Part shown: positions 5,680-52,177 of the stretch, one piece after another
How positions within the stretch are numbered: position 1 is the stretch's first letter
Layout of the letters: each line of letters starts with the position of its first letter
DNA from: Cercozoa sp. M6MM
Lineage: Eukaryota; Protista; Endomyxa: Ascetosporea
Strand: one strand, 5' to 3'
Length of the DNA stretch: 64,000 bases
NCBI GenBank assembly: GCA_040357565.1
Contig: JBDODJ010000015.1
Made by a program: the position numbers and the translations under genes
Notes under the pieces: model-generated
Database searches by the model: none
Seen by the model: only the letters and a program-made list of their open reading frames with translations
Told to the model about the DNA's origin: nothing

Positions 5680-5932
5680 TTACCGATTGCTGGTTCTATT
5701 TAAACAACAAAAAAAAACTTAAGCGTCGGATGCCCGCTACCTGCACCGACCATGAAGTCGACTTCGGTGTCTGGGGAACGTCAAAAGGGGAGTTGTATGG
5801 TCCTACCCTAAGCAGGCGGTAGACACAGCCATTTCTCGCGACCCGCCCCCGACTGGTGCAGGGGAACTACCGTACATAGTTGGTTTCCTAGAAGACTCAA
5901 CTAACTAAACGTCGGATGCCTGGTCGTTTGGG

Positions 5933-6462
5933 TCACGCGACCGAGAGCGCAAATGCGGTAGTCATGACGTTCATGGTGTCGTTTTCCCAACTAACGGAGC
6001 AGGACCCGTCGCGCGAGCCATCCCAGTAGCAAGTCGACGCGCTGTGGAGGCCAGCTCCATTTTTCTGCATCAGCACGCACGTGACGACGTACTTGTACGG
6101 CTTGTTTAACAGCTGCAATCCGCGCAGCGCTCCCTCAATGATCGACGTGGTCCATTCGTCGACATTTCTCTCCGTGTACATCTCATGGCCCACAACCTAC
6201 CAAAACCAATATTGTTTGTGACAAGGGAAGGATTTCAGGTTTATGCTCTTCTTTCTTTTTTCGGAGTAAACTGCATTTTGTCGCATACAGTACAGTACCT
6301 GTTCGATGGCCTTGGTTATGCAACGCTTGACCTCGTCATAGTCGAACTCTTGCTACACACGAGCTGGACATGAGTTTTTCTCAAGCAGATTCTTTCGGTG
6401 GAGCGACGAGCAGTTTGCTCACAGCGACGAAAAATACTCACCTCTTCGTCCAACGTGTTCAT
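5933..6462 (-). CDS. DYNLT1: Dynein light chain, Tctex-1 type (3 exons)
   Basis: MNTLDEE|QEFDYDEVKRCITKAIEQ|VVGHEMY...KPYKYVVTCVLMQKNGAGLHSASTCYWDGSRDG..WEN; KPYKY and QKNGAGLH are Tctex-1 signatures. Confidence 0.92.
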
Positions 6463-6926
6463 CTGAATGGTACTAAGTGCACGTTCCTCCTTTGACAAAG
6501 CTCTATTGCCCGGATTTTGCTGATTATGGTTCTGTATTTGTAGTTTCCTGTTTCCGCGCGGAAAAAGGGATGTTCATGGTCTCCAGTTCTCAGGCCGAAG
6601 CACGGGGTGCTAGGATACAAGCACAAGCAGATCGATGCGCAGGAAGTGGTCGTTTGTGATCTGTGATTGGTCAGATCAAATCACAGCCCATCCTCGCAAA
6701 AATAAAACGCCCGTGACTTTTTTTCTGCGAGTGGGCGTTGATCGCCAGACAAGCTTGTTAGCAACGAAACAGTGAAAAGGACACCGAGAGAACCGCATCG
6801 GGAGCAGGTGTGCATTTTGGGTACGCGCATGTTTTTTTGACAAGTTTCTTTTGGACCCAGTGTCTCCAGAGGACGAACTTGCTTGCTTGATTGTCCGGTT
6901 GCTGTCTCTTGCAGGGCCAAGCCAAA

Positions 6927-9005
6927 ATGCAGCGTCCGGTTGCTCTCTTAGCACTGCCTGCACTGGCAGCAGTGGTAACAGTGTCTTGTGGAAGTTGTTG
7001 TTTCAAATCAACCGTGGCGTTTGACGTGGAACAGGCGTCAGTGTCGTCAACGTCTGTTGTTGAGTTTTTCGACAAGCGAGGAAATCTCGTAAACACGTTT
7101 GATGCATGTGGCGCTTCCAAGGTAGTTTTACAATACGTTTATCGCGATTGTTTGACCTCGTTGACGGTTGGGCCTTCTCAGAACACGTGCGTGAACTTTG
7201 ATGCCACCGCGAAGGCATACAGGGTCAATATCCCGGCCGGTGTGCAGCTGGAAATCACAATTCCGCGAACACTGACCTGGTGCACTAAACTGTTGATCTT
7301 TCTTACCGTCTCCTTATGTGTTTCTGGTGTCTAGGCCTGTGAAGAACTGCCGTTTCGGTGTAAACACGCGGAACTATGGCGATTTGGAACACGATGTTGA
7401 AGTTTCGCTGTCGCGCCGACAGCGCGGACAATACTTTTTCCTGCACGTGACTGATAGGAGTGAAAGCCTTTGCGAAAACCACGATGTGCAGAAGCAGGTG
7501 ATTTTGCGCCCTGTGCCTCTTCGCAGCCATGTACGTTCTGTCCCTTCCTTTCTGTCCTTTCTGTTTGCAAGACCAGTTTTTCTGCAGGGCGCCGATGTTC
7601 CCGAAATCAAAACCAACGCGTGTTGCTTTGTGCCAGACGAGTGCATGTCGAAAAACGACTTGCGTGTGGCAAGCGGCAGCAAGCCTCTGGCTACCACTGT
7701 CGGTGCTTGCACCTTCGGCAGTGTGAATGGTAAATTCGATACTTTAACTTCTTGCTTCTGTGTTTGTACGACAGGTTTGTGTAGTTCCGGAAGGTGTGAC
7801 GGCGAGTTTCCACCGCTTGTCGACATTCACGCGATGGACAATGCGAAGCTGCGGCCGGCGATCTCCGAGCTTCCAAATTGAAGGGCCTACTGAGGTATGG
7901 TTTTTTGAGAAACGTTGCTTTGAAACTGTACCGTTTTTTTTTAAACGCAGGGCGCAGTCGACATTTGGAAGGACGCGGGCAGTGTCTGCGCGGTGAAATT
8001 CTCGTTCGATTCGCGAGCTGTCTGCGGCTCTGGTATGCTTGCGTTTCACTGGCTTGTGTTTGTTGTTTTGATGCTTGTATTGTAGGTCTCACTCCTCGTC
8101 GTATCGAGTTGAGCGACAAGCCCACGAAGGTTCGCGAAACCTTTGATGTGCCGATCATTCAAAAGCTTTCACTCAAGTTGGACTGGTCACGGACCTCGGT
8201 CTTCCTGAAGCATGTGTACGTTCTCTCGTTGTCCCCTACCGTGCCTTTTCGATGTTTATGTAGTGATTGTGCACACGACTTGGGCTACGATTGGAAGCCA
8301 CTTCCAGACACAGAAGGCGTCGCCAATGCTTTGGATGACACTGAGGATGCTTCTTTGCGACCTGTCGATCCAGAGGCTGTTCTTGAGTTGTTGAAGCCTC
8401 ACATTGTTGGTGCGTTGCTTTAGATGCGTGTTTTTGGCACCATTAAACATCTACAAATGCATGCAGAGTCGATCCCCACTGGCGTCACGATTCATCTTGG
8501 CGTTGATCTCAAGCTCACTGACTTTGCACTTCGGTAGTCATCAACACTCTCAACTTTGGCTGTGAAGATGTTTTTTTCGTTGTTTGCAGCTTGAGCCGGA
8601 TGTTCGTGAACCTTCCTTCGTGCCGTGTCAACAGCGAAGCCATGACTGTCTCAGCGATGGCGGTATTACTTTTGTTTCTTTAACTTTGGAGGTGTCAGAT
8701 AGAGTATTTACATATGCAGCGCATCAAGTACCGCGTCGTGCCACGCTTGCGTCAGCGTAACCCTTTTTTCGTTTGTCGTGTTGAGTCCCAATATGTATCG
8801 GTGTTTTGCAGAACTGTGCCAGGTGCAGCTCATTGACGTCGACGATTTGGTCGACCCAGGCAGATGCCCTATCAACCGCCGCGTGCTTCGGCCGCTCTTG
8901 CTGCACATTGCCAACGAACAGATCGTGAAAAACGACGTTTGCGGCCGCATTGACGAGATCATTCGCGACAAATCGCCGTTCGGACAGGCGTTGGCTTTCG
9001 AGTAA
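6927..9005 (+). CDS. Secreted Cys-containing hypothetical protein, multi-exon
   Basis: N-terminal signal-like segment MQRPVALLALPALAAVV; in-phase GT-AG exons where traced; no confidently recognised domain. Confidence 0.6.
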
Positions 9006-9261
9006 GACACTGACGAATTGAGTCGAACCTGTGAAATATTGGCGAACTTGTAGCTAGTAGCACTAAACACATTTTATACGCCTTGACGGGGGCGGTAGGC
9101 CTCTTTGGGCTCAAAAAACGCCTTGTGGCTCAAGAAACTGGCAAGGGAGTGTGCCTTGCCAACACAGGCCGTTAGCGACGTGCTTAGGGCCAGAACAGGG
9201 CTGTGCGCGATTCAGGCAAGTTTACCTGCGGCGCAATGAGGTATTCTTAGCTGCAGGCAAG

Positions 9262-11361
9262 ATGAAGTTAGCTCGTGTGCCAATCAAAAGCAAAAAAATC
9301 TCGGTTGTCTTTCGTGTCCAAATGCAGTGTCGCGTCAAGCTCTGGCACCGAGGTGTCAGAGACTTCGGTATACGCCGTCGTCTACGAACTGGCAGAAAAG
9401 AAGGTAGTATACTTGTACTGCATTTGGTTGTGTGGTTCGATCTCGATCGTTGTGTGTGCGTTTTTCCAGTCCTGGCGTGTGTCGCATGAGGGCGGTTGGA
9501 GCGAGCTGCACCTATACCGTGACGTGCGTGACGGCACATATCGCATTGTGGGCTGGCTCGTGTCGGAAGAGAAGCCGATCCTGATCAATGTCAACATCAC
9601 CGAGCTGTGCAAGCTGAAGATCAAGACGCCCGATTTCCACAAGCTCACGGACGAGACCGGCAAGGTTTGGGGTTTCGGGTACCACAACGGCACCAACTCG
9701 CTCGAGCAGGCACATGCTTTCGGCGAGCAGGTGTTGCAAGTCATCACGCGCTGCAAGGAGGTGCCTTTGCTCTGTCTAATTATATATATATATATATATA
9801 TGTATATAAATATATATATATATGTATATAAATATATATATATATATATATGTATATAAATATATATATATATATTATATCGAGGTGTCCAGGAGCAACG
9901 AAAGCTTTCGGCGCCGCCACCGGTGCTTCCTCCGCCGCCGCCAACACAGACCAAGAACACAGGTAGTTTATTCTCGTGTCGTTTGCAGGCATGTTTTGTT
10001 AATGTGTGTTGGGACTCGGGGGTTGGACAGCGACGTCGCCGCGGTCGCGCTGGGTGCCCCGACCGCCGTCGGTGCGTCGCAACTCGTGTGCTCAACCGCA
10101 GTTCCACAAGCGCGAAAGCGACGGTTTCGGTGACGACATCTTCGCGGCGGCACCGATGGGCAAACTGGACATTCTGCCTGTCAAGCCGTTGCGTGGTCCC
10201 GGTACTTTCCACATCCAACCTCTCATCCAACCTGAGAGCTACCGGTATGATACCTTATTGTCTAGGCTCGGACGAGCAGATCACGGACCCGCTAAGTGCA
10301 ATGCATGTGGAGCACGCAACTTACGACCCGCACACACGCACCTACACGGGCATTCCGCACGACTGGAAGAAACAACTTGAGGTGCAGTTCGGCTTGCCGC
10401 CACGCATGCTTGAATTGCGCCGTGTCAGAGGTGCGTTTCTTCCTTGTCTTTGATTGTGTGGGGTGAATGCATTCCGTCGCATGCTTTTGTAGGATACAAG
10501 GACCGCATTCCGTCGGTGCTGGTGCAGATGAGACATGCTCTGTGTGCTCAAGGCGGTCTCGAGAGCGAAGGCATCTTCCGCCTCGCTCCGGATGCTGAGC
10601 AGTGCGAGTGCGTGAAGCGGCAACTGAACGATGGCACCTTCCGCGGCTGCAACGACGTTAACATTGTTGCCAAGTGTGTTTCCTTCCTTTCTTGGGCAGC
10701 TTAATCAAGGTGTTTATTCTTATCAATCTGATCTCTCTTGGGCAGCTTAATCAAGGTGTGGTTCCGTGACCTTCCCGAACCGATCCTGTCGCCGCTGCCT
10801 GCTGTACTTGCTTTCTGCGTTGCTTTCGGTTGAGTTTACGCTCACGAACTGACCTGTGCACAGGAAGATATCGAGAAGGGCGGTTCCCCTGCTGCTGTGC
10901 GTTATCTTTTTTTTTCGCAGACTTCTGGTGTTGCTTCTTTATGTCGGAACTGTTCTCTAGGCTGGCGAGTTGGTGCAGAGGCTGCCAGAGCCCAACAACA
11001 GCATCGGTATGGCCTTCTTTCGTCCCCATGTACTGACTAACGTGGTCGGAGTGCTTCTGTGCAGTCCTGTGGCTGTTGGACCTGTGCTGCGAGGTCACTG
11101 AGCACCAGTCCATGAATCGCATGACTCCGAAAAACATTGCCATTGTCATTACACCGGTAACTCTCATATCATCACACACTTCTGCCTGTGTTTCTGCAGG
11201 AGGTCCTCTCACAAAATGCTGTACAACAGAACTTGATCACGTCAAACTTTACGGACCCAATCAAGAACCTCACGTTCTCGCAAAAGGCCGCCGACTTTGT
11301 CGAGAACGCCATCTTGTGGCGCATGCAAAACGATCCGATCACGCCGCAAGTCTGCCTCTAA
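9262..11361 (+). CDS. EVH1/WH1 + Pro-rich + CRIB/PBD + RhoGAP protein
   Basis: EVH1-like VYEL..SW..GTYRIVGW..FHKL..VWGFGY; PPPPP; CRIB-like ITDPLSAMHVEHATYD..YTGIPHDW; RhoGAP GGLESEGIFRLAP..NLIKVWFRDLP..NRMTPKNIAIV. The start (5-nt first exon ATGAA) is tentative. Confidence 0.85.
9781..9880. repeat. (TA)n microsatellite in intron
   Basis: Direct inspection. Confidence 0.95.
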
Positions 11362-11850: not shown

Positions 11851-14800
11851 ATGGAACCGCCTTCAGTCGCTACGACGGTAAACCATTGTCGGCGTGCAGA
11901 CACTTCTGTTTGACAGGATGCTTTTGTATTGGCAGATTGATCACTTTGGCGTGTTGGCGCTGGATGGCCAGGACGGCCCGGATGACGAGGTGCCGTCCTT
12001 CCCGTCGCGCCAGCACTCGACGGCATCGCCACAGCAGCCGCAGCAGCAGCAGCAGCATTGGGACTACGGGGTGCGCACGCTCTCTTTTTCTCTGTATCTG
12101 AATGTATCATATGGAATGTATCATATGTCAATTGTCGCAGTATGGCCACTACGACTACGGACAGGCGCAGCAGCAGATGTACTACCAGCAGCAGCAGTAC
12201 CAACAGCAACAACAGTACATGGCGCAGTCGCACCAAGGCGGTACTGTTTGTCTTGCATGTCTGAAAGTTATGACACTGCTCTACACATGGTTGGTGACAC
12301 AGGCCAAGGCAAGGAGGATGACACGCGATACTACCAGCAAGCGTACCCGTCGCCGGCCTACCATGGTAGCTTCCTCACTCGTCTTTAAAGAGTTGGGTGT
12401 ATTGTGTGTCTGTGTGTCTGCAGGATACTCGCCAATGTACATGCCGCAGACGCACCAGGCACAGGCAGCGCAGGACTCACAGCAGCCGCAGCAGCAGGGT
12501 CAGCAGGGTCAGAATCAGCAAGGCCAGAATCAGCAAGGCCAACAGGGACATCATTACGGTAGTTTGTTACCATAATGTCCCCAGGGATGTACCTATATGG
12601 TCCGATTCGTGCAGGCTACCCTCCTGGCTACTACCAGGGCTACTACCCACCGAACCCGTACTACCGGCAGCAGCAGTACTACATGCAGCAGCAGCAGTAC
12701 TACATGCACGGACACCCGCACATGGCGCCGCACTACGTACTTGCAGTTTGCTCTGTCGTTCTTACCAGTTGGTTTCCTGATACCCTGTTGCAGATGCCGC
12801 CGCAGGAGCAGAAGGAACTGGAGACGCCTGTCGTGATGAAGTCGCACGAGGAGGAGAAACGCGGTGCTGCGACTGACTCGACGCAACAAGAAAAGCCGCC
12901 GAAGCAGCAGCCGCCGAAGAAGCAGCCGAAGCCATCAGAAGAGCCGCCGAAGCAGGAGACGTCGCCGCAGTCGAAGCAGCGCAGCGAGAGCGCCGAGTCG
13001 AAGAAGAAGTCGAAGCGCAACGGCTCCAAGAAGCCAAAGGACACGTCGTCGCCGACTGAGGTATGTGTGTGTGGTATGTGTGTGTGTGGTATGTGTGTGT
13101 GTGGTATGTGNNNNNNNNNNTGTGTGTGTGGTATGTGTGTGTGTGGTATGTGTGTGTGTGGTATGTGTGTGTGTGTGTGGTATGTGTGTGTGTGTGGTAT
13201 GTGTGTGTGTGTGTGTGTGTACATGTGTTTGTGTATGGGGACGTGTGTATGGGAACAGACTGCAAGTGTTAAAAAGGAGGTTGAAAAGGAGAGCACCGGC
13301 GCTCCGGCCTCGTACAAGAGTGCTATCGCGAGTGCAGGCACCAAGAAGCCGTCGGCACCTGCGACGAAGCCGAGCGACGTCGATGCGCAGCTGCGCGCTC
13401 AGGTACGGCTGTCTGTACATCCTCCCCCCCCCCTCCCCCCCCCCCCCCCTCCCGGCAGGTGGCACAGCAGTCGCAGAAGGCAGAGAAAGCACGTGCCGTT
13501 GTGGCCACCGGGTCGGCTGCGGCGTCGACGTCGACGCGTGCCAAGGTACGTCGTGTGTCTTGCTGGGTACCTAGACTGGGTACCTAGAGTATGTGTGTGT
13601 GTGTGTGTGCAGGGCAAGGTGAATTTTGAGAGCGAGGAGTGGCGCTCGCAGCTGCACGTGCCGCAGGCGGACCAGCGACACCGCACGGCCGACGTGACGT
13701 CGACGCGCGGCGTGCAGTGGGACTCGTTCGGCCTCAGTCGCGAGCTGATGGCCGGCATCTTTGAGATGGGCTTTGAGGTGCCCTCGCCCATCCAGGAGGG
13801 TACCTTGCACCGTATGTATATATATATATATGTATATATAGATGTAGTGTATATGTATAGTGTATATGTGTATGTATAGTGTATATATGTATGTATATTG
13901 TATATGTATCGTGTATAGTGTATATCTGTATATGTATAGTGTATATATAGTTGTATATATATATATATAAATATATATATATATAAGATACATATATAGT
14001 AGAGATATATACAAGTTATGTGTATATGTGTATAATGGCAGTGGCAATCCCGCCGGCACTGGAGGGCAAGCACGTGCTGGCACGCGCCAAGAACGGCACG
14101 GGCAAGACGGGCGCCTTCGTGGTGCCGGTGCTGCACGCCGTGGAGCTGTCGCGGCACGAGGTGCAGGTCGTGGTGCTGGTGCCGACGCGCGAGCTGGCCT
14201 TCCAGACCAGCAACACGATCAAGCGCATGGGCAAGTACCTGGGCCACTCGCAGGCCAAGCAGCACAAGCACAAGAAGAGCGGCAGACGCGGCGGCCTCGA
14301 GTGCGTCGTGCTCACGGGCGGTCAGTCGGTGCGCGACGATGTGATCCGACTCAAGGCGGGCCCGCACGTGGTGGTGGCTACGATCGGCCGCCTGCTCGAC
14401 CTGGTGGAGCAGAAGGCGGCCGACCTGTCGCACACGAAGCTCGTCGTCATGGACGAGGCCGACAAGCTTCTGTCGTCGCAGTGGACGCCGCTCATTGAGA
14501 AGGTATGCCCTATAGATACTTCGCCTATAGACACTTCGCCTGTCTTACACTATCTTACCCGATTCGTGTTCGATAGGTGCTGCGATATACGCCGCAGGAG
14601 CGGCAGATTATGGCGCTGTCGGCGACGTTTCCGAACTCAGTGCGCGGCTTCCAACAGAAGTGGCTACCTGCCGATAGGTAGGCTAGTTCTTACCCCCCCC
14701 TTACCCCTTCCTACCCTCCCCACTCCCCATCCTTCTTACTGTGCGGCAGGTGCGCCACGGTGAGCACGATGCAGTCGCTGACGCTGGAGGGCGTCACGCA

Positions 14801-38639: not shown

Positions 38640-40312
38640 ATGAAGTTCACTGTCGCTACGTTAGCTGCCGCGTCGGCCACTGCTGTGGTTGCTCAGTACG
38701 ATGCCCACACCAGCAAGTACCAGAACATGGTGAGTCTCACACTCCGGAAATCCTTCCACCCATCCTTTGTGTTCATGGGTGAACTGTCTGAACTGTCTTG
38801 AACTGTGTGATGTGCAGTACGCTCCCCACCCCACGACTGCTCCGTACGCACCGAGTGCGCATGCTGCGGTGCCGATGACACCCGAGGAGGTGACTTCGCA
38901 GCTCATGGCGCTGACCAAGAAGGTGGCCGATCTCGAGCACGTGGACACCGCACCTTCGGCCGGCGTGGGCTGTGCCTCGCAGTGCCAGTCGGCCATGGCG
39001 GCCAAGGTTCCGCACTTGTGTCCCAAGGTGAGTTTGAGTGTCTCTTTAATGTTGAAACTTCGCTGCAAAAATACTGCACTGTGTCCTGCTTTTAAAGCTT
39101 GCTGTGATTCCTTGCAGTGGTGCACTGGCTTGTCGGCCAAGCCGTCCGTTGCGATGTCCGTTTTGGCAGCGGAGGACAACTTGAGCGCTGACACGGCCGC
39201 GTGCTTCTTTAGCGGCATCTTCCAAGCAATCGGAGATAACACTCGCGAGCACTCGTCGTTGATGGGCTTCCGCGTTCCCATCGTCAAGAAGGCGACCAAA
39301 GTGCGTGCCTCGCTGCGCCTTGGAGTCGAGGGTGTCGTCGAAGATGACGACATCGCCAAAGTTCCATTCTCTGCACTTTCATTTTACTGTATATATGAAC
39401 TGATTGAAATGTGCTGTGTGTTGTGCTGTACCAAACTGTAGTTCTGGATGGCCAATGTCGACGACACATCACTCCCAAAACTCCTGCTCGATGCCACAGG
39501 GACTCCTGCGGATATCACTGACTGCGCCAGCGACGGTCGCATCGTCGGTGAGCTGCTCAACAAGGGTCTTGTCGGTGAGGACAAGACCCTGGTCAAGACG
39601 CAGGTCGAGGGTGCACTGTTGGACATTGAAATGTCGACTGAGGTGCAGAAACTCGTCAACGGTCAGCACTGGCAGTTCAACAACATGGTAATGATTCTGC
39701 TCACGTTCATGGACGCTGCTGGTAATCTTGGAAGTCGCGGTGAAGACGGGCCCCACCCTGTGGTACGGCACCCAAAAATCAAGTGAAGTTGAATCGGAAA
39801 GTGGTTGGACTATATATTGGGTGTCTGTTGCTTGAACCTAGGTCATTCCGTCGGAGATGCTGCTTAAGTTCGCTCGTCCTCAGCTCAAAACCAACAAGTG
39901 GCGCTACGGGTAGTCTTACTTTCAGTATACATACAGTGCAGTAGTTTCAACTGATTAACTTTCTGTTTTCTGTTGCCACCGTACTGTCCACAGAAAGAAC
40001 CGCATGCCGAGCTACGGCTACGGACAGCAGCCGAGCTACGGTGGCTACGACAGCAGCGACTACGGACAGCCGCCTGTCTACGGCAACAGCTACGGCTCGA
40101 GTCAGTACGGTGGCTACGGCATGGACTACGGCACGGGCTACGACAACTCGTACGCCTCGTACGACCAGTACGACAACGGCTACGGCAACATTGGCGCCTA
40201 CGGCAGCAGTTACGGTAGCAACCACGGCAGCGCTGGCTACTCGCAGGGCTACGACAACAGCTACGCTTCGTACGACCAGTACAGCGATGGCTACGGCCAC
40301 ATTGCTGCCTAG
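38640..40312 (+). CDS. Secreted protein with a Tyr/Gly-rich repetitive C-terminus (candidate cyst or spore wall protein)
   Basis: Signal MKFTVATLAAASATAVVA; six in-phase exons join the 38767, 39448 and 40004 ORFs; GYDNSYASYDQY occurs twice. Confidence 0.78.
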
Positions 40313-40513: not shown

Positions 40514-43500
40514 TCAAAAAACGGGCAGTGCGTTGTCGACGGCGGCGTCGGACGTGTCGACGGCAGCGTCCGAGTCGGCGCCGTGCTCGCGCTTGTGTCG
40601 CTCGAGTTCGCGCGCCTGCTTCTGGGCCGACAGGATGAGACCGACAAAGACGTTGGTGAACAGCACCAGGACGATCTAAACGATGGCGTGTACATTGAAA
40701 CATAAAAGTACAGTGTGTACAGTGTCTGCATAGTCAGCTACCATAGTGAAGGCGACGTAGAGCCAGGCGATGGCGTACGAGGTCGCCAGGATCGAGTTGA
40801 ACACAGTGACATGCCTGAACAATGATGCATTTGAATAGTACTGGACAAGTCATGCCAGTCAAGAAAGAGACATCGTACAGGTTCTCAATGAAGAGTCGGA
40901 ACATGGTGAGATAGGCCTCGGTCAAGTCGGCCCATCCAAAAGGACCGCGTCGACTGGCCGGCAAGACGCGCGTCCACGTGTCGCCGATGAGGTAGACGCC
41001 AATAACACCAAAGACGTACCACACGGCCAGCATGCAAAGCAGCAGCGACGCGAACTGAGGCGCGATACGGTACAGCGAGAACACGATGCGTCGCAACGAC
41101 ACCGATGACACGAACACGCGCAACGATGTCAGACACAGTGCGAAACGTGCCAAGTCACTGCTGTCGCTGTTGTCGCCGTTGCCTCCAGTCAGTACAATCA
41201 GCAGTGCCAGTACTGGACTGCCTAGCACCAGCACCAAGTCTGTTCGGTTCGCTTGCTGCCGGAAGTCCTTCGGCGGGTGCTACCCAAAACCAAGGACACA
41301 CTCTAGAACTCCTACATAATACTGCCACGCAGCTAGTGTACCACAGTGTCGTGTTTCCAGAAGGCGAGCCAGCCCCAGCCGAGAATCTAAACAAACATTT
41401 AATTCGCTGTTTGCGCTCGAGTTTGTGAAATTTCGCGCGAATTTGCGTCAATTTCGGCTGAGAGCACCTTGCTGCCGACTTCGAGAATCTGCAGGACCGA
41501 CAAAGCGATCAACATGCCGTCTAGCTCGTCTTCGTTCCGTGCTGCACAATACAAAAACTGTCAAGTGCCTTCCGCGCGGACCCGACAGGTCAGTTTACCA
41601 AGACCGTACTGTGCCAACACTAGAAGCTGCAGCAGCAGCACCAACTGCGATACCGTCACGGCAGCACGTGACATGCAGGCACGCCGACACACCTGCCAGG
41701 TTAAAGGGGAATTAAAGAAGAGTTAAAGGGGGATGAAAAGGGAAGATGACACCTGCACCAGCGGCCGCAGACAAGCCGAATCACGCGATGCCCAGGACCA
41801 GGCATTGGGACTACGACAGGGGGTCAAATGGGGTGGAGAAGGAGGTGTAAAGGGGTGTAAAGGGAGGTGTAAAGAGAGGTGTAAAGAGAGGTGTAAAGGG
41901 AGGTGTAAAGAGAGGTGTAAAGGGAGGGTGTAAAGGGTGTAAAGGGGGGTAAAGTTACGGAATATCTTGGTGACTCCTTGCGCGTAAGTACTCCTGACTG
42001 GCAGGCGAGCGGCGCCACCGGTCCAGTGCGCGCATCACACTCAGAAACAATCCGCGACTCATCACGGCTGCGCGGGGATGGGTGAAAGGAAGCAAGAGGG
42101 TGGGGGGGGGGGGGTAAAACTACGGAAATCACTGCCGACACATGCTGCGTGTCCCGGAGCAACTATACGGGGGGAGGGGGGGTAAAACAAGATAACAGAG
42201 GAAGGGAGCAAAGACACCCTGCAACATGAAGGAGGCCAGCAGGTCGTCGACGAGAGCGTCGCGCGACTCCTCGAGCGACAAGCGGCGCCGCAGAAACTGC
42301 CGCACCCTCTGCAGTGTCACTGTGCCTGTACAAACATATCGTACAAACGGACCAACGGTACACGGACACAAACGTTAAAAGGCAATAGTTAAGGGGGGCA
42401 ATATTTAAGGTTGCAATAGTTAAGGTTGTAAGGTTGCAATGGTTAAGGTTGCAATGGTTAAGGGAGCAATAGTTAAGGGAGCAATAGTTAAGGGAGGACC
42501 CACCTGCCCGCGCGAGTGACGCTTGCTGCTGCGCCGCCGCTTCGTCGTCGGCCTCGTCTATGTCGCCGTCGCCGTCCATGTCCTTGAACTGGAGGGAGGG
42601 GGGGGTAAAGAGCGGGTAAAGAGGGGGTAAAGAGGGAATGTAAGAGAGGGGTAAAAAGCGGGAAAAGGGGTGTAAAGTGGGGGTAAAAGGGGGATTAAAA
42701 AAAATAGAGGGGGGGGGGGGGGGGGTAAAGCACAAGACACCGCCAGTGTAGCCACACCGCCCTTAGACATGGCACGCAATGTCACCCAGTCTGTACACAC
42801 ACATTTAAGGGGTCATATGTACGTTACTTAAGAGGGGCGAGATACCGTCCTGATGCGAAACGACAGTGTCGTCGCTCATTATCGCAAATGCCGCCACATA
42901 TCGCGCGTCACGCAACTGGTGAACAGGGGTAAGGTAGGGGGGTAAAGGGGGGGGGGGTTAAACTACCGTCTGATCGCGGGCCTCGCTGCGCGCCAATGAT
43001 TCGTCAAACGCGCCTCTACCAACACAGAGGCAGACTTTACCCCCCCTTACCCCCCCCCCCCAAAGTGAAAGTACGAGAAATCGTCGATGATGAGGCCAAG
43101 AACGACAATGTAACCGAACAGCGCCAGCACGACGAAATACAGAATCAAGAGGCCGCTTTTGCTCATGGCCTGTGTTGTCCCGTATTTTCTCATCCCAGGA
43201 AAATACCAGAAACAACAAGAACTACAACAACTGCAACGTACGGGATACACGATGTCAAAGTAGTTGTCACCCGTCGATATGAACACAAACACCGACACCA
43301 ATGACCGATTGACTGAATTCAACGGGGGGGGGGGGGGGGTAAAGGTACATGGGGTATATGGGTATAGGGGGTAAGAGGTACAGTTGAACATCGAATTGAT
43401 CGGTTCCTGGATATCATTGAGCACGGTGCGGAACAGCATGGTTCCCAGTGCCGCAGCAACCTACACAAAGCATGATCGATCAACAAAAACCGATCAGAAC

Positions 43501-44935
43501 CGATCAAGAATCGATCATAAACGCCAAAGGACAATTTGGTAACAGTACGATATTGCACGCCAAGAAGAGAAACATCACGGCGCGCATTGACGGTGCCAGC
43601 AGCGTTCTAACGAACGTCGACGTCACTCGACGCACCTGCTCGCACATCACACAACAACGTTCGCTTTAACTATTACTGTCAAAACTGTATGTCAATGAAA
43701 GCTTTCATTTCAGTTCACTTTAAAACTTCCAGTTATCAAGAAGCTATGAAACTTCAGATACAGCTTTAAACTTCCAGTTAAAGCTGTAAAACTGCCAGTT
43801 AAAGTTCAAAGATTCCAGTTAAGCCTCAAAGTTGTCAGTTAAAGGTTCAAAGTTGCTTTAAAAGCCCAAACACAATTAGAGTGAAGAAAATATACACTGG
43901 AATTGACGAATAGCACGAGCAGTGGACGGCAGCACAACAGAAGAATTGTGGGACGCTGCTTTTCCTTAGCCTGAGTCGCACACACACACATCCGTCAGTC
44001 AAAAAAAAAAGCAGTAAAGCTACAGCAGCAAGCAGAAAACAAAAGCTAAAAACCAAAATAGGGGAAAAACTGTCAGCAGGTGAAAGTGAATTACCGAGGC
44101 GATCGCCATGATGACGAAATCGAGCCACGCTAGAGTCACCAGCAGCGCGTAGACTGCCGAGTCTGTCTGCAGGTGCGTTCGCGTGCGTGAGTTGCCTGTA
44201 CAGTACATTGTCCAATTAAACCATCCATCTGGATTATCCAACTGGACCGCCCAACTGGACCACCCGACTGAACAAAAGAAACTTGGCTCATCTGTACCGG
44301 TCCGGAAACACACGAGCACGCGAACGGCCGCATCGACAGTTTCCACCTGTGTCACGAGAGCATCCACATCTGACCGAGAAGGAAAGAAAAGTGAAAGGTA
44401 CGACGAGACAGAGCACGAGAAACGTCAGCACTTCTGTCGACACTTTCGTCGCTGAAACAACATAGTTGTATCTATACCCTCCCTTTCTACCCCCCCCCCC
44501 CGGGAAGACAAAGAAAAGAACCAGTCACTGTGGCCTGGCTCGTGTCGCTGCCAAACTCGCTGTCTGTCGAGTACTGCACGTGTGCGTAAAGTTAATTAAC
44601 GGGCATAGTTAAGGGGCATAGTTAAGGGGCATTGTCAAGGGGCATAGTTATGGGAGAGTTGTGTTAGGGAAGTACAGAGTTAAAGTGCGTTACCTGCACA
44701 GGTTCGAAGAAGCCAAGCAGGCAGTGCGCAATGACGACGAGATGCTGCAGTAGCATCCACGACGAACTTTCGCGCAGTCGCCACAGTCCTGTCCATGTCG
44801 ATGTCCATACCGACAGTCCATTTGTACAGGGACACAGACTTAATTAAGGGTACGCAGTAGCCACTCGTGCTGCGAGAACTTGAGACGCGACTCGACCACC
44901 AAATCGGCTGCATTTTTGTACATTCTCATATTCAG
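40514..44935 (-). CDS. Two-pore channel module (2x6TM) of the gene above
   Basis: Two S1-S6 repeats with pore helices; EF-hand-like loop DMDGDGDIDEAD in the inter-repeat linker. Confidence 0.88.
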
Positions 44936-47900
44936 CTGGACAAAAAAAAAACTGTACTTGTGACCGGCTGACGAACGCATTCGACCGCTGCGTCAACCTT
45001 TGTGTCCTATTGAAACAAAAGTACCCTTTGTATTCTCCTCTTACCCCTTCAACTTGTCCTCACCTTGGTGCAGTTGAAGGTCGAGCGAGCAACCAACGCA
45101 ATCTCGTTGAAGACCCTGTCACACCAACAAAAATATCATTTGGACCAAGCACACAAAGAGGAACAAAGGCTACATGAGACGGTAGGACTGTGCGTCCACA
45201 CTGCATACAAACACATGGATGTATCAATCTTACCCACACACACAGGCACACACAGCCACACACACACATAGCTTTAGAAAGGAAACACCGACTCCAAAGT
45301 CCGTCATTCAAGGAGGTTTCCGGCCAAGTTTTGATCCAGTCTTTTTTGCTATAATTTATATAATTGCAGACACATTGTATCTGTACACAGTCTAGGTAAT
45401 GTATACCGACCAGCCGAGTGCCCAGTGTCGTCATCATAGATCTGGAGAACCTCGCGATCATAGGCTCCTGCAGACCAAACAACAAGTCAGTGAGACTCGG
45501 AACTGTGACTCAACAAAGCACAAAGCAAAGCGTACCGCTGCGACGGAAGCGCAAAAGCTCATTCGCGCTCATCCAGATGATCACAGCTGAAGGACACAAT
45601 CATCAATTCGATAAACAAGCTTGTTGCTTCAACCGAAACATACCGACAGCAGCACATAGCGAGACACGCGAAATGTAGGCCCAGGTTTTGTCCTTGTCTT
45701 GAGTCAGTCTAATACAAAATTATCGTAGGATCGTGCGGAAGTAACTTTAAAGTGGCAAAGGTACAGCGACTCTTGCACAGGCAACAACAGTGCCGTCAAC
45801 AAGGCTGGCCGTTTGATACTTGCGACACCAGAGGGTGGAGCTACAAAAACCCCATGATTTAAAAAAAAGATAACAAACAGATTACCATATTCGGACGATG
45901 ATTCGATTCGAGCAAGGAAGCTTCGTGGACGCAGCAGCATTCGACGCGTCTTGTACGGCAACTCGGCCGAGTGGTTACCACTCAGCACGGTTTTCATGTG
46001 CGACGGCTTATCGCTCAATACATCACCCAGAGCAGCCACCTCCTTGTCCTTGAGCTACGGACACCGTCACTCAAGTTCACAAAAACTAAAGCAGAGTGAA
46101 GCGAATCAAAACCAAAATCAAAAACACTGCTCAAGCAAAACGAAACTGTTCAAACGAAAGACAAAACAAGCAATTAAAAAAAAAAGCAAAAAAGAAAAAC
46201 TAAAGTCGAGGCAAAGCAAACAAAATACGAACACAAATCAAGCGAAAATATACCGAGCTGAGAGCAGGCCGGCGAGCCAACTGCGTATCAGTCAACTCAT
46301 CTGCAAAAACAAGGACAATAAACCCTAAAACACGCAAAACAAACTATTCCACCCCCCAGGAGATCGCCTGCAACAAAGTGCAAGTTCTCGTCGAACACGA
46401 TCAGGCGTTTCTCTTGAGTGAGCGATCTCTGTGTGATAACTCACAAAATAAATCTCAAGTTCAACAAAAATAAAAGGTGCCAGCTCACAGTTTTGCGCAG
46501 CTGAGCGTCGAGCGACTTCAACTGAACGTCCACGGCAACGACGAGTTTCAGCACCGAGTCGAAGCGAGCAACCGTGACACCAAGACCACCACTCGTGAAA
46601 GCGTAGATGTCGGTGGTTACGAACTGATCGGCCACAGATCTGTTGGCACACAGTGAACAAGCTTGCTTGATAATTCATAAGGTTGTTTCACAGATACAAG
46701 GTTGTCTAAGACAGACACGGAAGTACCTGGCAGCCTGATACCAAGGTCGTTCAGAGACCTCGTACTGACAGTTGACGCCGAGTGACTCCTGAACTTCGGT
46801 GGCCGTGTCGTTGTCACGTTGACCGCCCTCGCCTTTCATTCCGTCCTGTCCATGGCAGCCGGTACAAATAGACCAGACAAATGTACTGTCCAGCTGGACG
46901 GTACAAACCAAACATGCAATACCTGCTGTAGGGTCAGAAACGACGTCAGACAGAACTCAGTTGACGCGTCCTGCACGCGCGACAGCACGACACTCCCCGC
47001 CTACAAAAGATCGATATCACAGCTAAACGACTAAATCAAAAAGAAGCCCACTTCGTTATCGTTTAGAACATGCGACAGTTCGTTTCTAAACAATTCAAAA
47101 TTAATCAATTCCCTGATTTATCAATGACCATTCATCAAGAATCAATTTAAAACCTAGAAACAAAAGATACAAACACTAAACTTACCGCCAAGTGATTTGA
47201 GCACCGGCGAAACGGTTCCGAGCCAGTCCGTTTGACGAGTCATACACCTTCAAGCCGTTGAAAACCGTCAGAGACAAAGCAAAAACTACAACAACTGAGT
47301 CCAACCTCGTGCGTGGCCACGTATAGCGATGAAAAGCGAAAGGCGAAACGACTCGTTTCACGCACCGACAGCGCCTCCGGGTGCGACGGACGCTCCGTGC
47401 GCCAAGAGGGCTAGAATCAAATTAGAGTTAAGAAACGCGTTTAAATACAGCAATTTCCAAACTGAGTGAGCGAAAAAACAAAAAAGTTACGATCAGGTGC
47501 GAAGTGATACCGTCCATCTCCAAAGGAACCGTCGCAGTGGAATCTGCATTAAAAAGATCCAACTCAACTTTTTTTTACTTTGAAAGCTTCTATAAACTGA
47601 AGCAACTGGGAGATCAAGTATCGAGTTGCACCATTTTGCGCAAACTGCGACACAGTCGGCAGATTCGACCGCAGTCGCGACAGCAGAGTCGACAGCGTGG
47701 CACGACTTTCTTCCAGCACACTCTGCCTTGTGCAAACACAAGAGTGTATTTGCCATGCTTTTGCCTAGTTGTTTTGTTGTACCAGAGGAGTCGACAAGGC
47801 TCGGCGGGTGGCGTACTGCATGCGAAGATCAACAAGACGCTCAGTGTCACTCGATTCCGACGCAATTAGCACCGCCTAAAACAACAAATTACATCAAAAC

Positions 47901-50824
47901 ATTTCCTTTTATACAAAAGAAGCCAAAACTTACATTCAGTGCAACGGCCAAAAGCAGCACAAGGAGTCCTGTCAAAATCCTTTGCTTCAGCACTGCTTTC
48001 TGCGAAAGCAGTCATACAAACACAGTTTGTAGATTAAAGAAACAGGAATGAAACAGTACCGAAGCCACTCGGCGACGGAACCTTGCACGTTCAAACGTTG
48101 CCTAAACATACACACGAACTGTAGCTATTACAGTAAATTGCTGGTCTTTCTTACATCGACACGCTGTGCTTCGGCATCAGTCTGTGCAGAAGTAACATCA
48201 ACAGACACAGGGATCGACATTGAAAAATGTACATGCACAGAAAGCGCAAGGTCCAGTTCAATCGCTGCACGTCTTTCGAGATTCCTTGCCTAATAACAAA
48301 AGCAAACTCAAAAAGAAAACAACCTAAAACACCCAACTTACAGCAATCAAATGTTCTGGCGCTTCGTCGTCGGGCACTGCGCTCTCAAAGTGCGTCAGAT
48401 CGTGTCTATACTCAACAAAAAACGACTTGCACCACATCGAATCAAACGAGCCAGAAAACGAACCGGCGCTGTGGAGCCGTGGCAATCAGATCACCGACGT
48501 GTGCAGCAACGTCTATGGTTTCAACCTGTTCAACAAAGATTGGGTCGACGGTTCGCTTGCCACTGTGGTCGGCAGTTTGATCGGCGGTTTGATCGGCGGT
48601 TTGATCGGCGGTTTGATCGGCGGTTAAATCGCCGTGGTCACCGATTTGTTCGGTGTGTTGATCCTGGTCGTGTAGTGAGTGCTCCACGAGGGTAACCATC
48701 TCGGTTTCGATCGGTGTGGCGACAGCGATGGTTCGCGGAGTCGCAGGTGTCAACACCGGTGCATGCGTGATTGGCATCGGTTCAGCAACGGTGAGTGAAG
48801 TCGACTGACCGATCAGTTGCTGTTGCATTTGCTCGAACGCCGGCGGCATCACCTGAGTCGTTGGATTGCTGTTCAAGCACACGCGTATCGTAACAAATGG
48901 ACGGAACAAATAGACGGGCTGATAGGACGGGACAAGGTACTGTTCGTGCCACAGTCGCACGTCGAGTGCAGTGCGAAACACTTTGGCAGCCGAGATCACT
49001 TGGTGCGCCTGTTTAGTCAACACGAAATACAATAGGTTTCAGAAAAGGGCAGTTACATCAGGTTTCAGAAAAGGCACCGCAACGAGTTGCTTCTGCTGCG
49101 CACGCTTCTGTCGCTGTCGCATGCGGCGCATCGTTATTGTCAGCTGCTCGGTCTGCTCGATCCGCGCGTGCAGTGGTTTCGGCACTGAAACAAAAACAAA
49201 AAAATGTCAAGCACACAGGAAGCATAAGGTAAGAGGATACACAGTGCACTGAGCCACATTGCAACAACCAGCGACGGCAGCAACACGACACAGAAAACCA
49301 GAATGTCCGTTTCACGTGCATCTTTCTTCAAACAGAACAGGTGATGATACAAGGCGAATCGAAGAGTAAAAGGGGAAGAGGTCCAAAGCACACCTGTGCA
49401 CTGGCACGCGACATGATCGACGTCACTTTTGGCAGGCACAGTCCGTGGAAACTGCACACAGACGCTGTCGCGCTGACGTGTGTAGCATCCCACTGCGTAT
49501 CAGACTTTCCAACTGCACTTGAGGGAAACTCGAAGTAAGAAAGATAACATAGGAGGATATAGAACTGTAGAAACCAGGTGCATTGTTCCACATGGACGCC
49601 GTTTTGTCAGACAGCTTGCGCCATTTTTCGTCACTCGAGCAATCACTCAGGTAGAACGCGTGCGTTTCCGCCTCAATTGTCACCAAGAGGTCGTTCTACA
49701 TGTGTCAAATAACAGTGAGTGGAAGGAAACTCAATGTACAAACAACACCTGCAAGCGGCACGTGCGATCGCGCACGAACGAAGCAATGTCAAATGTGGCA
49801 AACACGTGTAAGTTGCCACCGGGCAATCTCGCATGTTTCGTCAGCGTTGAATAACCTAGTTTATAAGGTCACGCCACAAGTACAACGCCACAGAAGTAAA
49901 GTTGCTACAATGAGGTCGATGTACCACTTCCGTAAATGTCATTTCGCACGTCCTCCAACTCTTCCACGGACGACCATCTAAAGGACAATAACAAATATGG
50001 CGAGCCGGAGCTCATGATTTTCATCAAACTCGACGAACCCAGTGTTGTTGTTCGAGACGCTTTGGAACGAAAACTGGCCTACAGAGCGCCTTTAAAGCTA
50101 GAAATACAATAACAGAGCAGAAGGTACCCTTAACGAAAGCGTCATCGAACTGGACCGAATCCAAGAGCTCTTGGGAAACTCCGTCAATGGTCTGAAGCAA
50201 GGGGCTTGAAGGCACTCTCTGCCGCGTAAAGTCGCGTCCCACCTGTTCATTTTTTGTATCCGTATAAACTGTGCAAGCTTACACATTTTACCGTTAGAGT
50301 ACCTGAATCAACTCGGTGGTCGATGTATTGGACAGCACGATGCCCAGCGAGTGCACGTAATTCTCCAGCTGGTACAACTCAAACGTCGACCTGAGAGGCT
50401 CTAACTGCAGTGTTTCGTTTCTACGGTAACACAACTAATCACAGAGACAACGGAGCACAAAAACAATATTACAACAAGGTCTCATCCAGCACGCCAGCAA
50501 AGGTGACATCGATCAGTTCAGACACTTTCAGAGTTGCCGTGTCCAGATCTGCCAGAAAAATGAGAGCAGATAAAAACGGAAGAGTGAATGAGGACTACCA
50601 AAGCGCACGTCTTCGATAGCGTCACCAGCAAGTGCAACGGCGCTGTCGCGAGCACTCAGTGTGACTGCACGTCGCCACTTCACATTACGGTATGTAAATG
50701 TTATTCAAGCATATCTAAAAAATCTTAGGACACAACTTACAGCGCCCCAGACAGCAATGACGTAGAACGCAATCGTCAGAACAAAGACGCCACGTAGCAC
50801 GATCAACTGAGTCGACCGACCCAT
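40514..50824 (-). CDS. Cache/dCache sensor - two-pore channel (TPC) fusion: TM-Cache-like-TM-linker-TM-dCache-TM-TPC
   Basis: About 38 in-phase GT-AG exons from ATG 50824 lead to the channel exons. dCache motif YEVSERPWY..Y..VVAVD. TPC hallmarks: S1 LLGFFEP, RP in S4, pore FISTGDNYFDIVYP, second pore LTMFRLFIEN, S6 TNVFVGLIL. One junction (44976 or 44985 to 44936) is inferred. Confidence 0.72.
41843..41953. repeat. 13-bp tandem repeat (GGTGTAAAGRGAG)n in a TPC intron
   Basis: Direct inspection. Confidence 0.85.
42381..42496. repeat. 15-bp tandem repeats (GCAATRGTTAAGGKW) in a TPC intron
   Basis: Direct inspection. Confidence 0.8.
48576..48625 (-). repeat. 12-bp coding tandem repeat encoding (TADQ)x4 in the cytoplasmic linker of the Cache-TPC protein
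   Basis: TTTGATCGGCGG x4 on the + strand. Confidence 0.9.
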
Positions 50825-50914
50825 CTCGACGAAACAAAAAATACGATCCTCCGCTAAAATGTGGCACACGACACCGTGCCGACAAGCGCGCACTGACACA
50901 CCTGTCAGCACACG

Positions 50915-51256
50915 TGTGAGCTACTTGTAAGGCTCAATAAAATGTACACGTGACCGAGAGTGCAGATGATGATTGTTTTTGACTGGCAGCCGCTGGGTTG
51001 AGTGGGATTGATTGGTCACACTGCCAAGCGACCCCTGCCCCGCGCTTTTGAACGAACCTTACTGCGCCCAAAGGTACCGTTCAGAAGGAGTTGTCGGGGT
51101 ACTACAGCTTAGCTCGCTTTTAAGAAGCGGCCAACCGCAAGAGGCAGGGATGGCGAAAATTCCTTTGAGGCTTGCCCCACATCGATGACCGTGATTTCTG
51201 CTGGGCTATTTCAACTGCTTCCTGTCGTCAGTGCCGCGGTGCTTTCTGATTGAACG
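50915..51256 (+). ncRNA. Candidate U3 snoRNA
   Basis: Ordered U3-like boxes: A' TACTT (50922), A-like AGGCTCA (50930), C' ATGATGA (50966), B GAGTGGGA (51000), C CGATGA (51183), D CTGA (51246). Nested stems GACTGGCAGC/GCTTCCTGTC, CCCTGCC/GGCAGGG and CTTTTGAACG/CGTTCAGAAG. No annotated ORF covers the region. Confidence 0.55.
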
Positions 51257-51372
51257 TTGACTAAATTAAATGCCGCCTTATGCCGGATACATTACTGTAC
51301 TTAAGGCGTACTATTTACAGTGATTTCTGCAGTGCAGCGCAGTCTCGACCGACCTGACGACAAGAGTCCCGT

Positions 51373-52177
51373 TCATTGCTGTTCTCGATCTCCCTTGCTG
51401 CTCACTCGAGTTTGGCACTGCTGTGCGAAAACAAGATGTCGAATCATCTGAACGCGTCGCTGCAACAAAACCTTCAGCACGAAGGCTCGCTGGTGCTCCA
51501 ACTGTGCTTGAAATGTCGACGTCCGAGTCGCTTCTCCTCGGTCTGTTCCTGTAGTCGCTGGAGATTTCAGGTCGAATCGCCCATTCGTGTCGGCGATGAC
51601 TCGGCAGGTGCGACGTCGACGCTGCAGGATAGCGTCGAACACTACCGTGTCTACACCTCCTCTCGTTCGACTTGAATCACTGCTTGAGGCACTATTTGGT
51701 GGCGTCGGTGTCGACTCCATGTGCAGAATGATCTTCTTCAAGGCCAAAGATGTCTTGCTGTTGCGGAGCCTGTTCGTAGCGAGCAATCACGCAGTATATA
51801 TCGGACAAAGAATTGAACCGAAGCGACGATACTCTTCAAGTCTCAGTTGGATTGAGGCGAGCATGGACTGTGTTTCAGGGGGGACGTACTTTTCTGGATA
51901 CACAACCACAGGGAACGATAAAGCTGTCGCACCTGTCGAACGCGTCTCGAAAAAGCCCTGTATGGCAGTGATGCAAGAGCTTTGTTCGATTCGCGCATCT
52001 CCGTGGCCTGTCGCTGGATTCTGTCACGAACACAAAGAATCAGCTGACGGTGGACCTCTCTGTCAGACCGTGTGAGAATGAATACGGTTCGTGCAATTGG
52101 TGAAGAAACGAAAGCACGCTGCGTGTTGCACGCGGGATGCAGTGTTGATGAAGACCCTGCACACGTGGTGTGGTTTT

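Follow-up and report, generated by a model that had tools for sequence, protein, structure and literature searches.

The intron-rich gene and its relatives

We analysed a stretch of 64,000 nucleotides (hereafter, the window) of contig JBDODJ010000015.1, from the assembly GCA_040357565.1 of Cercozoa sp. M6MM. Its minus strand carries, between positions 50824 and 40514, a gene that we rebuilt as 58 exons with a median intron of 62 nt, encoding a predicted protein of 1,798 aa. The features are the following:

40514-50824, minus: whole gene model, from ATG 50824 to stop 40516-40514 (gene finder and hand-curated GT-AG exon chain)
50741-50824, minus: exon 1, with start codon and TM1 (VFVLTIAFYVIAVW), hydropathy peak 2.54
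49394-50677, minus: predicted extracytoplasmic module between TM1 and TM2, about 260 aa (gene-finder exons only)
49241-49325, minus: exon with TM2 (ILVFCVVLLPSLVVAMWL), hydropathy peak 2.60
48060-49184, minus: predicted cytosolic low-complexity linker between TM2 and TM3 (gene-finder exons; 198-aa open frame at 48445-49038)
47783-47999, minus: two exons with TM3 (ILTGLLVLLLAVALNAVLIA) and the start of a long sensor helix (hand-traced canonical splice sites)
45765-47722, minus: dCache-like sensor 2, model residues about 616-975, 12 exons
46727-46845, minus: exon with the N-terminal half of the motif, Y-x4-R-x-W-Y (YEVSERPWY), aligned by hhalign onto P0015 1058-1073
46489-46639, minus: exon with the C-terminal half of the motif (Y in TDIYAF, D in VVAVDVQL), aligned by hhalign onto P0015 1084-1137
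45536-45708, minus: two exons with TM4 (WAYISRVSLCAAVAVIIWM), hand-traced and phase-consistent, GTATGT and GTACGC donors, hydropathy 1.71
44854-45467, minus: junction exons 45467-45407, 45115-45064 and 44935-44854, with canonical sites
43075-44788, minus: channel domain I, S1-S6, pore motif ISTGDNY (Pfam Ion_trans 6.2e-5 on 43050-43460)
41753-43015, minus: linker between domains I and II, with one EF-hand-like loop (DMDGDGDIDEAD, exon 42504-42588); low-confidence exons
40514-41692, minus: channel domain II, S1-S6 (Pfam Ion_trans 7e-11 on 40737-41279)

An earlier sequence-only reading of this DNA had claimed an uninterrupted frame of GT-AG exons from ATG 50824, and the chain does reach the stop codon, with no in-frame stop or frameshift to bridge across 5.4 kb of predicted coding sequence. 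The best end-to-end chain scores 363.9 bits, against 8.4 on the opposite strand and 12.6 on the reversed sequence, and is far above chance level. The codon and splice models of the gene finder were trained only on a paralog located on another contig (C217). This paralog, P0001 (MES1912185.1), corresponds to 52 exons of C217 at 100% identity; another, P0002, matches contig C1558. From a point ahead of TM3 through to the end of the channel, P0001 and the window model run collinearly, and blastp between the two gives a single HSP (539-1768 vs 610-1800, E=1e-86). An HMM built from other genomes only also finds three collinear domains on the model. The GC content is 0.565 in exons and 0.421 in introns, and the median intron length is the same as in the paralog. 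Intron positions, on the other hand, are not conserved between the two genes, which have three in common, versus 3.6 expected by chance. Several exons of the model are uncertain. Alternative exon paths exist at 47632-47285, five of the 57 donors are GTT, and one of these is required inside the sensor, a donor type found in none of the 51 introns of the paralog.

The best relatives of the channel are proteins of 1,272-2,593 aa with N-terminal dCache_1 or MCP-like_PDC_1 domains, EF-hands, and two Ion_trans domains. The family occurs in Cercozoa, Paulinella, the vampyrellid Leptophrys (a Trinity transcript), the foraminifera Nonionella and Bolivina, and metagenomes, and some of its members are single transcripts or, in metagenomes, apparent single ORFs. 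All the nearest relatives of the window channel have the same N-terminal layout, and the spacing of four TM helices and two sensors recurs through the family. The Cache-TPC architecture is not unique to the genome of Cercozoa sp. M6MM: the family, so far mostly from Rhizaria, can be described as two TM-flanked sensors followed by a two-pore channel (TPC). Public protein sets already contain it, unremarked, and one JGI automatic name pairs Ion transport with an MCP-like PDC sensor. Our literature search found no publication on Cache-TPC fusion channels, in agreement with the earlier statement that no characterised example was known.

The outer modules and an amino-acid-type motif

The four extra TM helices proposed earlier were all located by hydropathy, at model residues of about 16, 294, 578, and 995. 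Exon 1 is preceded by an in-frame stop at 50923-50921, and model residues 1-73 align to P0001 55-121 (E=0.006). The linker between TM2 and TM3 includes a TADQ repeat in a 405-nt exon (48464-48868), and TM3 (hydropathy 2.39) aligns to a TM of P0001 at about residue 650.

The sequence-only reading had assigned a Cache module to each pair of helices, which is supported for the second pair and not for the first. In the module between TM1 and TM2, neither the family sensor HMMs, nor hhalign, nor Pfam gave a Cache signal. The position of this module matches that of sensor 1 of the family. The domain between TM3 and TM4 was matched by a family sensor-2 HMM, made from eight proteins all from other genomes, with 22.8 bits (E=2e-9; the best of 100 shuffles reached 3.4) and with 20.6-23.1 bits over four alternative exon paths. 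Local hhalign of the window and paralog sensors against the family gave a probability of 96.4% (E=1.2e-9). Three consecutive sensor exons map in order onto residues 1058-1165 of P0015, within its Pfam dCache_1 match; P0015 (48.2 bits) and P0026 (49.8 bits) are both above the gathering cut-off of this profile (PF02743, 45 bits). Pfam dCache_1 itself had no match on the window's single exon pieces, nor in a six-frame scan of the genome. In P0001, the Pfam dCache_1 match is below threshold (E=0.17), and both sensors neighbour bacterial Cache-clan sensors in the ESM Atlas (0.96-0.97). The TM3-TM4 domain is homologous to proteins with a significant dCache_1 match in the aligned region, and only one of the two modules of the window can be called Cache.

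The motif of dCache_1AA, the subclass that binds amino acids, consists of Y121, R126, and W128, then Y144 and D173 (PctA numbering), with halves 13-17 residues apart and 27-34 residues between Y and D (PMC8915833). In the window, the exon with YEVSERPWY is placed by hhalign inside the Pfam dCache_1 match of P0015 (P=0.008), and exon 46489-46639 is conserved with residues 912-962 of P0001, the site of its sub-threshold match. The corresponding residues are Y791, R796, W798 (next to Y799), Y815, and D840. The gap from W to Y is 16 residues and that from Y to D is 24, slightly under the 27-34 quoted in PMC8915833. At the sequence level, the window sensor has a complete dCache_1AA-type amino-acid motif (YEVSERPWY…Y…D). 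Sensor 2 lies between the hydropathy peaks at residues 578 and 995, a spacing that recurs in relatives, and the domain is predicted to be extracytoplasmic, between two TM helices. One exon path has a hydrophobic stretch inside the sensor (residues 683-701), which might be either a strand or an artefact of the model.

One might suppose that the fusion is real and that the Cache modules form a built-in ectodomain similar to alpha2delta, without a ligand gate, with roles in folding, trafficking, binding of matrix or partners, or a constitutive gating set-point. The Cache-bearing alpha2delta and CACHD1 of animals do act mainly on channel trafficking and kinetics (PMC8915833). In the window, no Cache signal is left in sensor 1; several relatives start the motif with F instead of Y, and its R is absent from the family consensus. 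Yet the Y-R-W...Y...D motif of the window sensor is complete and spaced almost as in bacteria, the arrangement is the bacterial one of TM, sensor, and TM, where the signal is transmitted via the exit helix, and no family member scanned has a VWA domain. We regard this alternative as rather unlikely, and prefer a ligand-sensing module.

The channel and its junction with the sensor

The sequence-only reading had described the C-terminal part as a full 2x6TM two-pore channel, and both 6-TM domains are confirmed: Pfam recognises two Ion_trans domains on exon pieces, and family-HMM matches are collinear over domain I (117.7 bits on the model, with the pore aligned) and domain II (151.6 bits, with pore and S4 aligned). 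The 12 channel helices and both pores are present in order. This predicts a single polypeptide with a tandem pair of 6-TM Ion_trans domains, their one-chain status resting on the linker exons 43015-41753, whose source is the gene finder only. In this linker, the loop DMDGDGDIDEAD aligns with the EF loop of the family, and Pfam found no EF-hand in the window linker piece (relatives have Pfam EF-hands). The family profile aligns in one piece to residues 157-703 of Arabidopsis TPC1, covering both domains (E about 1e-42); for the same profile, summed scores are higher with four-domain CaV3 channels than with AtTPC1, and the window domain II piece had only weak, mixed matches in the PDB. The second pore is divergent (FIENLH, versus VGEGWH in the family), and because of this the window paralog may conduct differently or poorly.

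Two introns, of 291 and 128 nt, lie in the junction between sensor and channel, and a single Logan contig derived from the reads of run X1 spans it (43694-45625). Exon tracing could have merged two (or three) adjacent genes of the same strand, i.e., a 4-TM Cache protein ending near 45351 and a separate TPC starting from ATG 44929 or 44923. The sensor frame is indeed open beyond the donor at 45407, up to a stop near 45351; the two in-frame ATGs lie 6-12 nt inside exon 44935-44854, and family-HMM conservation begins at model residue 1063, just past these candidate internal Met codons. The fusion also requires a 52-nt exit exon and the two junction introns, which are among the longest of the model, with splicing predicted from DNA alone. 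Against the two-gene reading, the bridging exon keeps the phase and has canonical sites, and the strong, T-rich polypyrimidine acceptor at 44936 marks exon 44935-44854 as internal. Moreover, sensors and channel are in one protein in every full-length close relative, including transcript-derived proteins and metagenome proteins that nearly fill their contig, and in the C217 paralog the introns between the exons from TM4 to S1 measure only 54-62 nt. We consider two genes improbable, and a single gene, with the Cache sensor fused to the TPC in one polypeptide, very probable. The exon chain and the layout of the relatives support the original proposal that one chain holds a Cache sensor, flanked by TM helices, and after it a 2x6TM TPC.

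A drifting, non-functional remnant of a Cache-TPC gene, whose features would say little about function, is very unlikely. In its favour, sensor 1 is degenerate, pore II has diverged from VGEGWH to FIENLH while the third paralog, P0002, retains the consensus pore, and five of 57 introns need GTT donors besides long low-complexity introns. Against it, the 5.4 kb coding frame is free of frameshifts and in-frame stops, nothing is missing or out of order among the 12 channel helices, the two pores, and the sensor motif, and the GC contrast between exons and introns is retained.

Proposed function and known systems

Our best explanation of the whole, which we find somewhat more convincing than its alternatives combined, is an intron-rich gene of Cercozoa sp. 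M6MM for a Cache-TPC with ligand-controlled gating. The protein would be laid out as TM1, outside module, TM2, cytosolic linker, TM3, dCache-type sensor, TM4, a linker of ~90 aa, and a TPC-type channel. With the four extra helices, both modules would face the outside or the lumen while the N-terminus of the channel stays cytosolic, a topology that the earlier reading had called self-consistent. The membrane-distal pocket might bind a small ligand, with amino acids and similar amine or carboxylate compounds as the likeliest candidates, and the exit helix of the sensor (TM4) would then shift, as it does in bacterial dCache receptors. Via the TM4-S1 linker, this movement would reach the first voltage-sensor-like domain and bias the opening of a dimeric cation pore, probably permeable to Ca2+. 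Cytosolic Ca2+ is a possible second input through the EF-like loop. Given the fusion, we put direct control of gating by a ligand at even chances or slightly better; the ligand gate, its specificity for amino acids, and the membrane in which the channel resides are inferred from the predicted protein.

Like TPC1 of Arabidopsis (PDB 5DQQ/5E1J) and the animal TPC1-3, the protein carries two 6-TM Ion_trans domains in tandem on a single chain and, as in plant TPC1, there are EF-hands in the I-II linker of relatives, with one EF-like loop in the window. It differs from TPCs by about 1,050 more N-terminal residues, four more TM helices, and sensor modules predicted to face outside. To our knowledge, a ligand-binding domain outside the cytoplasm is not part of any characterised TPC. 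Single domains give equally good scores against T-type CaV channels, and the window differs from its own family by a pore II without the GEGW signature.

The resemblance to bacterial dCache_1 receptors (PctA of Pseudomonas aeruginosa, Mlp37, Tlp3) lies in a sensor of ~400 aa between two TM helices, with the Y-x4-R-x-W-Y...Y...D motif and a conserved GV..D strand. Where these receptors signal through a HAMP/MCP, kinase, or cyclase module, the output of the window protein is an ion channel on the same polypeptide. It also comes from a eukaryote and from an intron-rich gene, its sensor exceeds the typical bacterial length, and the window copy is below the Pfam threshold.

In the animal CaV auxiliary subunits alpha2delta and CACHD1, dCache_1 modules, some with the amino-acid motif, also accompany a voltage-gated-type cation channel (PMC8915833). 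These are separate proteins, with a VWA inserted in the Cache and a nested double dCache, whereas in the window the Cache is covalently upstream of the pore chain. Pfam found neither VWA nor VWA_N in any window piece or relative scanned. All the eukaryotic dCache_1 proteins found by that study have the VWA insertion (PMC8915833), a rule to which the Cache-TPC family would be an exception.

Channel and sensor modules of the predicted gene

The predicted Cache-TPC gene lies on the minus strand of the window, which corresponds to positions 83399-147398 of contig C15 in an assembly of 23.6 Mb and 2,235 contigs. The gene and the elements in the window are the following:

50824-40514, minus strand: predicted Cache-TPC gene, 58 exons, 1,798 aa
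45467-44854, minus strand: sensor-to-channel junction
40004-40312, plus strand: Tyr/Gly/Ser-rich open frame (YGQQPSYGGYDSSDYG...), convergent with the channel gene and ending ~200 nt from its stop
5296-5395: run of N, 100 bases, an assembly gap or a withheld stretch
13111-13120: run of N, 10 bases, likewise a gap or a withheld stretch

A divergent U3 snoRNA at 50915-51256, head-to-head with the gene, was also considered and rejected, since Rfam gave no match on either strand of 50600-51700 at E up to 1.

The sequence-only reading had proposed a two-pore channel of twice six transmembrane helices, and homology bears this out. Pfam matches Ion_trans in two separate exon pieces of the window, and a family HMM gives ordered matches along the stop-free segments, starting at S1 of domain I and ending at S6 of domain II. 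With an HMM derived from eight proteins of other genomes, the two channel domains of the model score 117.7 and 151.6 bits. The family profile aligns with Arabidopsis TPC1 in a single stretch over both domains (E ~1e-42), with four-domain CaV3 channels higher in summed score. Pore I reads ISTGDNY, which is typical for the family, and pore II reads FIENLH at the position of the family VGEGWH; S4 of domain II has the sparse arginine pattern seen in the family. An EF-like loop, DMDGDGDIDEAD, is aligned to the family EF loop, and Pfam did not call an EF-hand for it on single exon pieces of the window.

Hydropathy places four helices before the channel, at residues ~16, 294, 578, and 995 of the model. 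With this arrangement, the two modules enclosed by the helices would lie outside and the N-terminus of the channel inside, matching the topology proposed from the sequence alone. Both modules had also been taken for Cache or dCache domains, an assignment that we retain for the module between TM3 and TM4 and for which we found no signal between TM1 and TM2. Pfam left Cache unmatched on single exon pieces of the window, and a six-frame Pfam scan of the whole assembly for dCache_1 and MCP-like_PDC_1 gave zero matches, as expected for a domain split into exons of 15-56 aa. Since single exons went unscored by Pfam, we assessed homology in two other ways, exon by exon with hhalign and on the joined model with HMM and hhalign. 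Against A1, an alignment of nine family proteins, three consecutive sensor exons were placed on residues 1058-1073, 1084-1137, and 1151-1165 of the family relative P0015 (P = 0.008, 0.14, and 0.74), falling collinearly within its Pfam dCache_1 match. On the joined model, a sensor-2 HMM from eight proteins of other genomes scored 22.8 bits (E=2e-9; best of 100 shuffles, 3.4), a score that was stable over four alternative exon paths. When the sensors of the window gene and its paralog were compared with the family sensor 2, hhalign gave a probability of 96.4% over 179 columns. The module also has the full dCache_1AA amino-acid motif as defined in PMC8915833, with YEVSERPWY followed by the Y in TDIYAF and the D in VVAVDVQL, and a W-to-Y gap of 16 residues. 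For the TM1-TM2 module, neither the family HMMs nor hhalign nor a frame-by-frame scan gave a Cache signal; its counterpart in the paralog and in relatives is Cache-like.

Paralogs, exon chain, and number of genes

The genome of Cercozoa sp. M6MM, an unclassified cercozoan (Rhizaria), encodes at least three paralogs of TPC type: the window gene, P0001, and P0002. Using the channel exon 40737-41279 as a query, the best protein match was MES1912185.1 (P0001), a sensor-bearing protein of the same organism. It is found on contig C217 of the same assembly (1952-10792) with 100% identity in 52 exons, the gene spanning 8,844 nt. The second match, the partial paralog P0002, corresponds to contig C1558. 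It retains the consensus pore II VGEGWHEVMY, which is missing from both sensor-bearing paralogs, and its N-terminus is truncated by the end of the contig. The window gene and the C217 paralog are ~25% identical in protein and have 57 and 51 introns, respectively, of about 60 nt. They have three intron positions in common, for 3.6 expected by chance. Massive turnover of introns would explain this, as would errors in one of the models or in both. As the positions differ, the intron-position test is silent on whether the locus holds one gene or two.

To build the gene model, we started from the minus-strand stop-free segments and the sequence itself. Between TM3 and the first channel helix, we traced 20 exons by hand; their acceptors are canonical, their donors are GTA or GTG with a single GTT exception, and their phases agree. 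A dynamic-programming gene finder, with codon and splice-site models derived from the paralog (52 exons and 51 introns), connected ATG 50824 with the stop at 40516-40514 in one continuous exon chain. This chain scored 363.9, against 8.4 for the opposite strand and 12.6 for the reversed sequence. The N-terminal and channel portions were added to the model after retraining, the sensor exons being those traced by hand. The combined model has a median intron of 62 nt and a GC content of 0.565 in exons versus 0.421 in introns. A gene finder always returns some path, and the exon chain alone thus proves little; its weight comes from the control scores, the GC contrast, and the homology.

The uninterrupted GT-AG frame claimed from ATG 50824 was recovered from end to end, with reservations on some of its exons. 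Five of the 57 donors are GTT (47597, 49574, 50038, 48463, and 44521), versus none of 51 in the annotated introns of the paralog. These may be mis-called exons or an oddity of the locus. The donor at 47597 is required to keep phase with three well-formed sites downstream, and an alternative exon path omits two small exons at 47632-47285. The gene finder was the sole source of the exons of the N-terminal module and of those at 43015-41753, in the linker between domains I and II. The introns of this linker (41700-43000) are rich in C/T low-complexity repeats, which produce long false open frames on the minus strand (PPPP... and SLYT repeats).

We consider it very probable that the window locus is one gene. 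The alternative is that a sensor gene ends near 45351 and a separate channel gene starts at ATG 44929 or 44923. The open sensor frame can indeed extend to a stop near 45351, the two ATGs are in frame, and family conservation begins shortly after them. The junction introns, of 291 and 128 nt, are also long for this gene. Yet, the rule in the family is that sensors and channel are in one protein, and the window model is collinear with the paralog P0001 in one HSP (E=1e-86). In the paralog, the introns between the exons of TM4, linker, and S1 are just 54-62 nt long, which also favours one gene. Within the junction itself, the acceptor at 44936 is strongly T-rich, which argues for an internal exon, and the 52-nt bridging exon is in phase and flanked by canonical sites. 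An assembly chimera at the junction is ruled out by a single read-derived contig, a Logan contig of run X1, that spans 43694-45625. Relative to the window, it carries an additional C after position 44489, which is intronic in the model and leaves the frame unaffected. A search of RNA runs for this DNA found none that contained it; the matching read-derived contigs were all DNA, from the probable source sample.

Related proteins in Rhizaria

The nearest channel relatives have 1,272-2,593 aa, for a usual TPC length of 700-900 aa. In P0004, P0006, P0010, P0015, P0016, P0026, and P0037, the N-terminal half has Pfam matches to dCache_1 and/or MCP-like_PDC_1, followed by EF-hands and two Ion_trans domains, and P0015 and P0026 exceed the dCache_1 cut-off. 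The family comes from Paulinella micropora, Leptophrys vorax (a Trinity transcript), Nonionella stella, and Bolivina argentea, as well as from JGI, ENA, and Logan metagenomes. We take the two foraminiferal sets (N. stella and B. argentea) to be transcriptomes. The 2,080 aa of P0026 are encoded on a contig of 7,423 nt, sizes that would imply one uninterrupted ORF. Most members have twice the series of a TM helix, a sensor of ~350-400 aa, and a TM helix, and then the channel. Given this shared layout, the Cache-channel fusion is a real, expressed architecture in Rhizaria, regardless of the window locus. Homologous-protein searches with the whole of P0001, its pore, and the P0026 sensor returned nothing beyond the query and vertebrate Nav channels, and did not recover the window gene's own NCBI protein. 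A related-locus search for P0037 and P0004 was empty.

The architecture had been put forward as a candidate new receptor-channel. Full-text literature searches gave no report of Cache fused to a TPC, nor of Cache domains in Rhizaria. The proteins themselves were already in public sets, unremarked, and one automatic JGI name joins "Ion transport protein" and "MCP-like first PDC sensor".

Proposed gating and comparison with known systems

If the protein works like bacterial dCache receptors, ligand binding in the distal pocket would displace the exit helix (TM4), and this shift could be passed through the ~90-aa linker to the first voltage-sensor-like domain of a presumably dimeric pore. The EF-like loop could supply Ca2+ feedback, as in plant TPC1. 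We tentatively propose, as a possibility somewhat short of even, that Rhizaria host a family of single-chain amino-acid-gated TPCs, in which a VWA-less dCache module of bacterial type is wired via its exit helix to a pore of voltage-gated type. The main functional rival is a built-in role like that of alpha2delta, without ligand gating. If amino-acid gating were true, the voltage-gated superfamily would include a new class of ligand-gated channels, and the channel might detect amino acids from prey, either in the surroundings of the cell or in the lumen of the food vacuole.

Known gating in the voltage-gated superfamily relies on voltage, on cytosolic ligands or lipids, or on the aid of separate subunits. 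An outside-facing chemosensor of bacterial style in the pore chain would link an external or luminal chemical directly to a cation signal. For alpha2delta and the gabapentinoid drugs, the effect of an occupied Cache pocket on a CaV-type channel is still an open question. In this family, the sensor and the pore belong to one protein, available in several intron-free or cDNA versions, which makes the influence of Cache on the channel testable. The family also suggests that amoeboid predators (Cercozoa, Foraminifera, and vampyrellids) have a device for sensing chemicals or nutrients, and signalling in these organisms is, to our knowledge, almost unstudied.

Two key surveys of Cache domains (including PMC8915833) place them in eukaryotes only in alpha2delta/CACHD1, histidine kinases, a Naegleria cyclase, and a streptophyte kinase. 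A VWA insertion is described in all eukaryotic dCache_1 proteins (PMC8915833). The dCache_1 of alpha2delta/CACHD1 type has this insertion, whereas we saw no VWA in the window pieces and relatives scanned from the Cache-TPC family, which contradicts the generalisation and calls for its revision. If the proposed gating holds, the family would be a covalent counterpart to the alpha2delta-CaV partnership.
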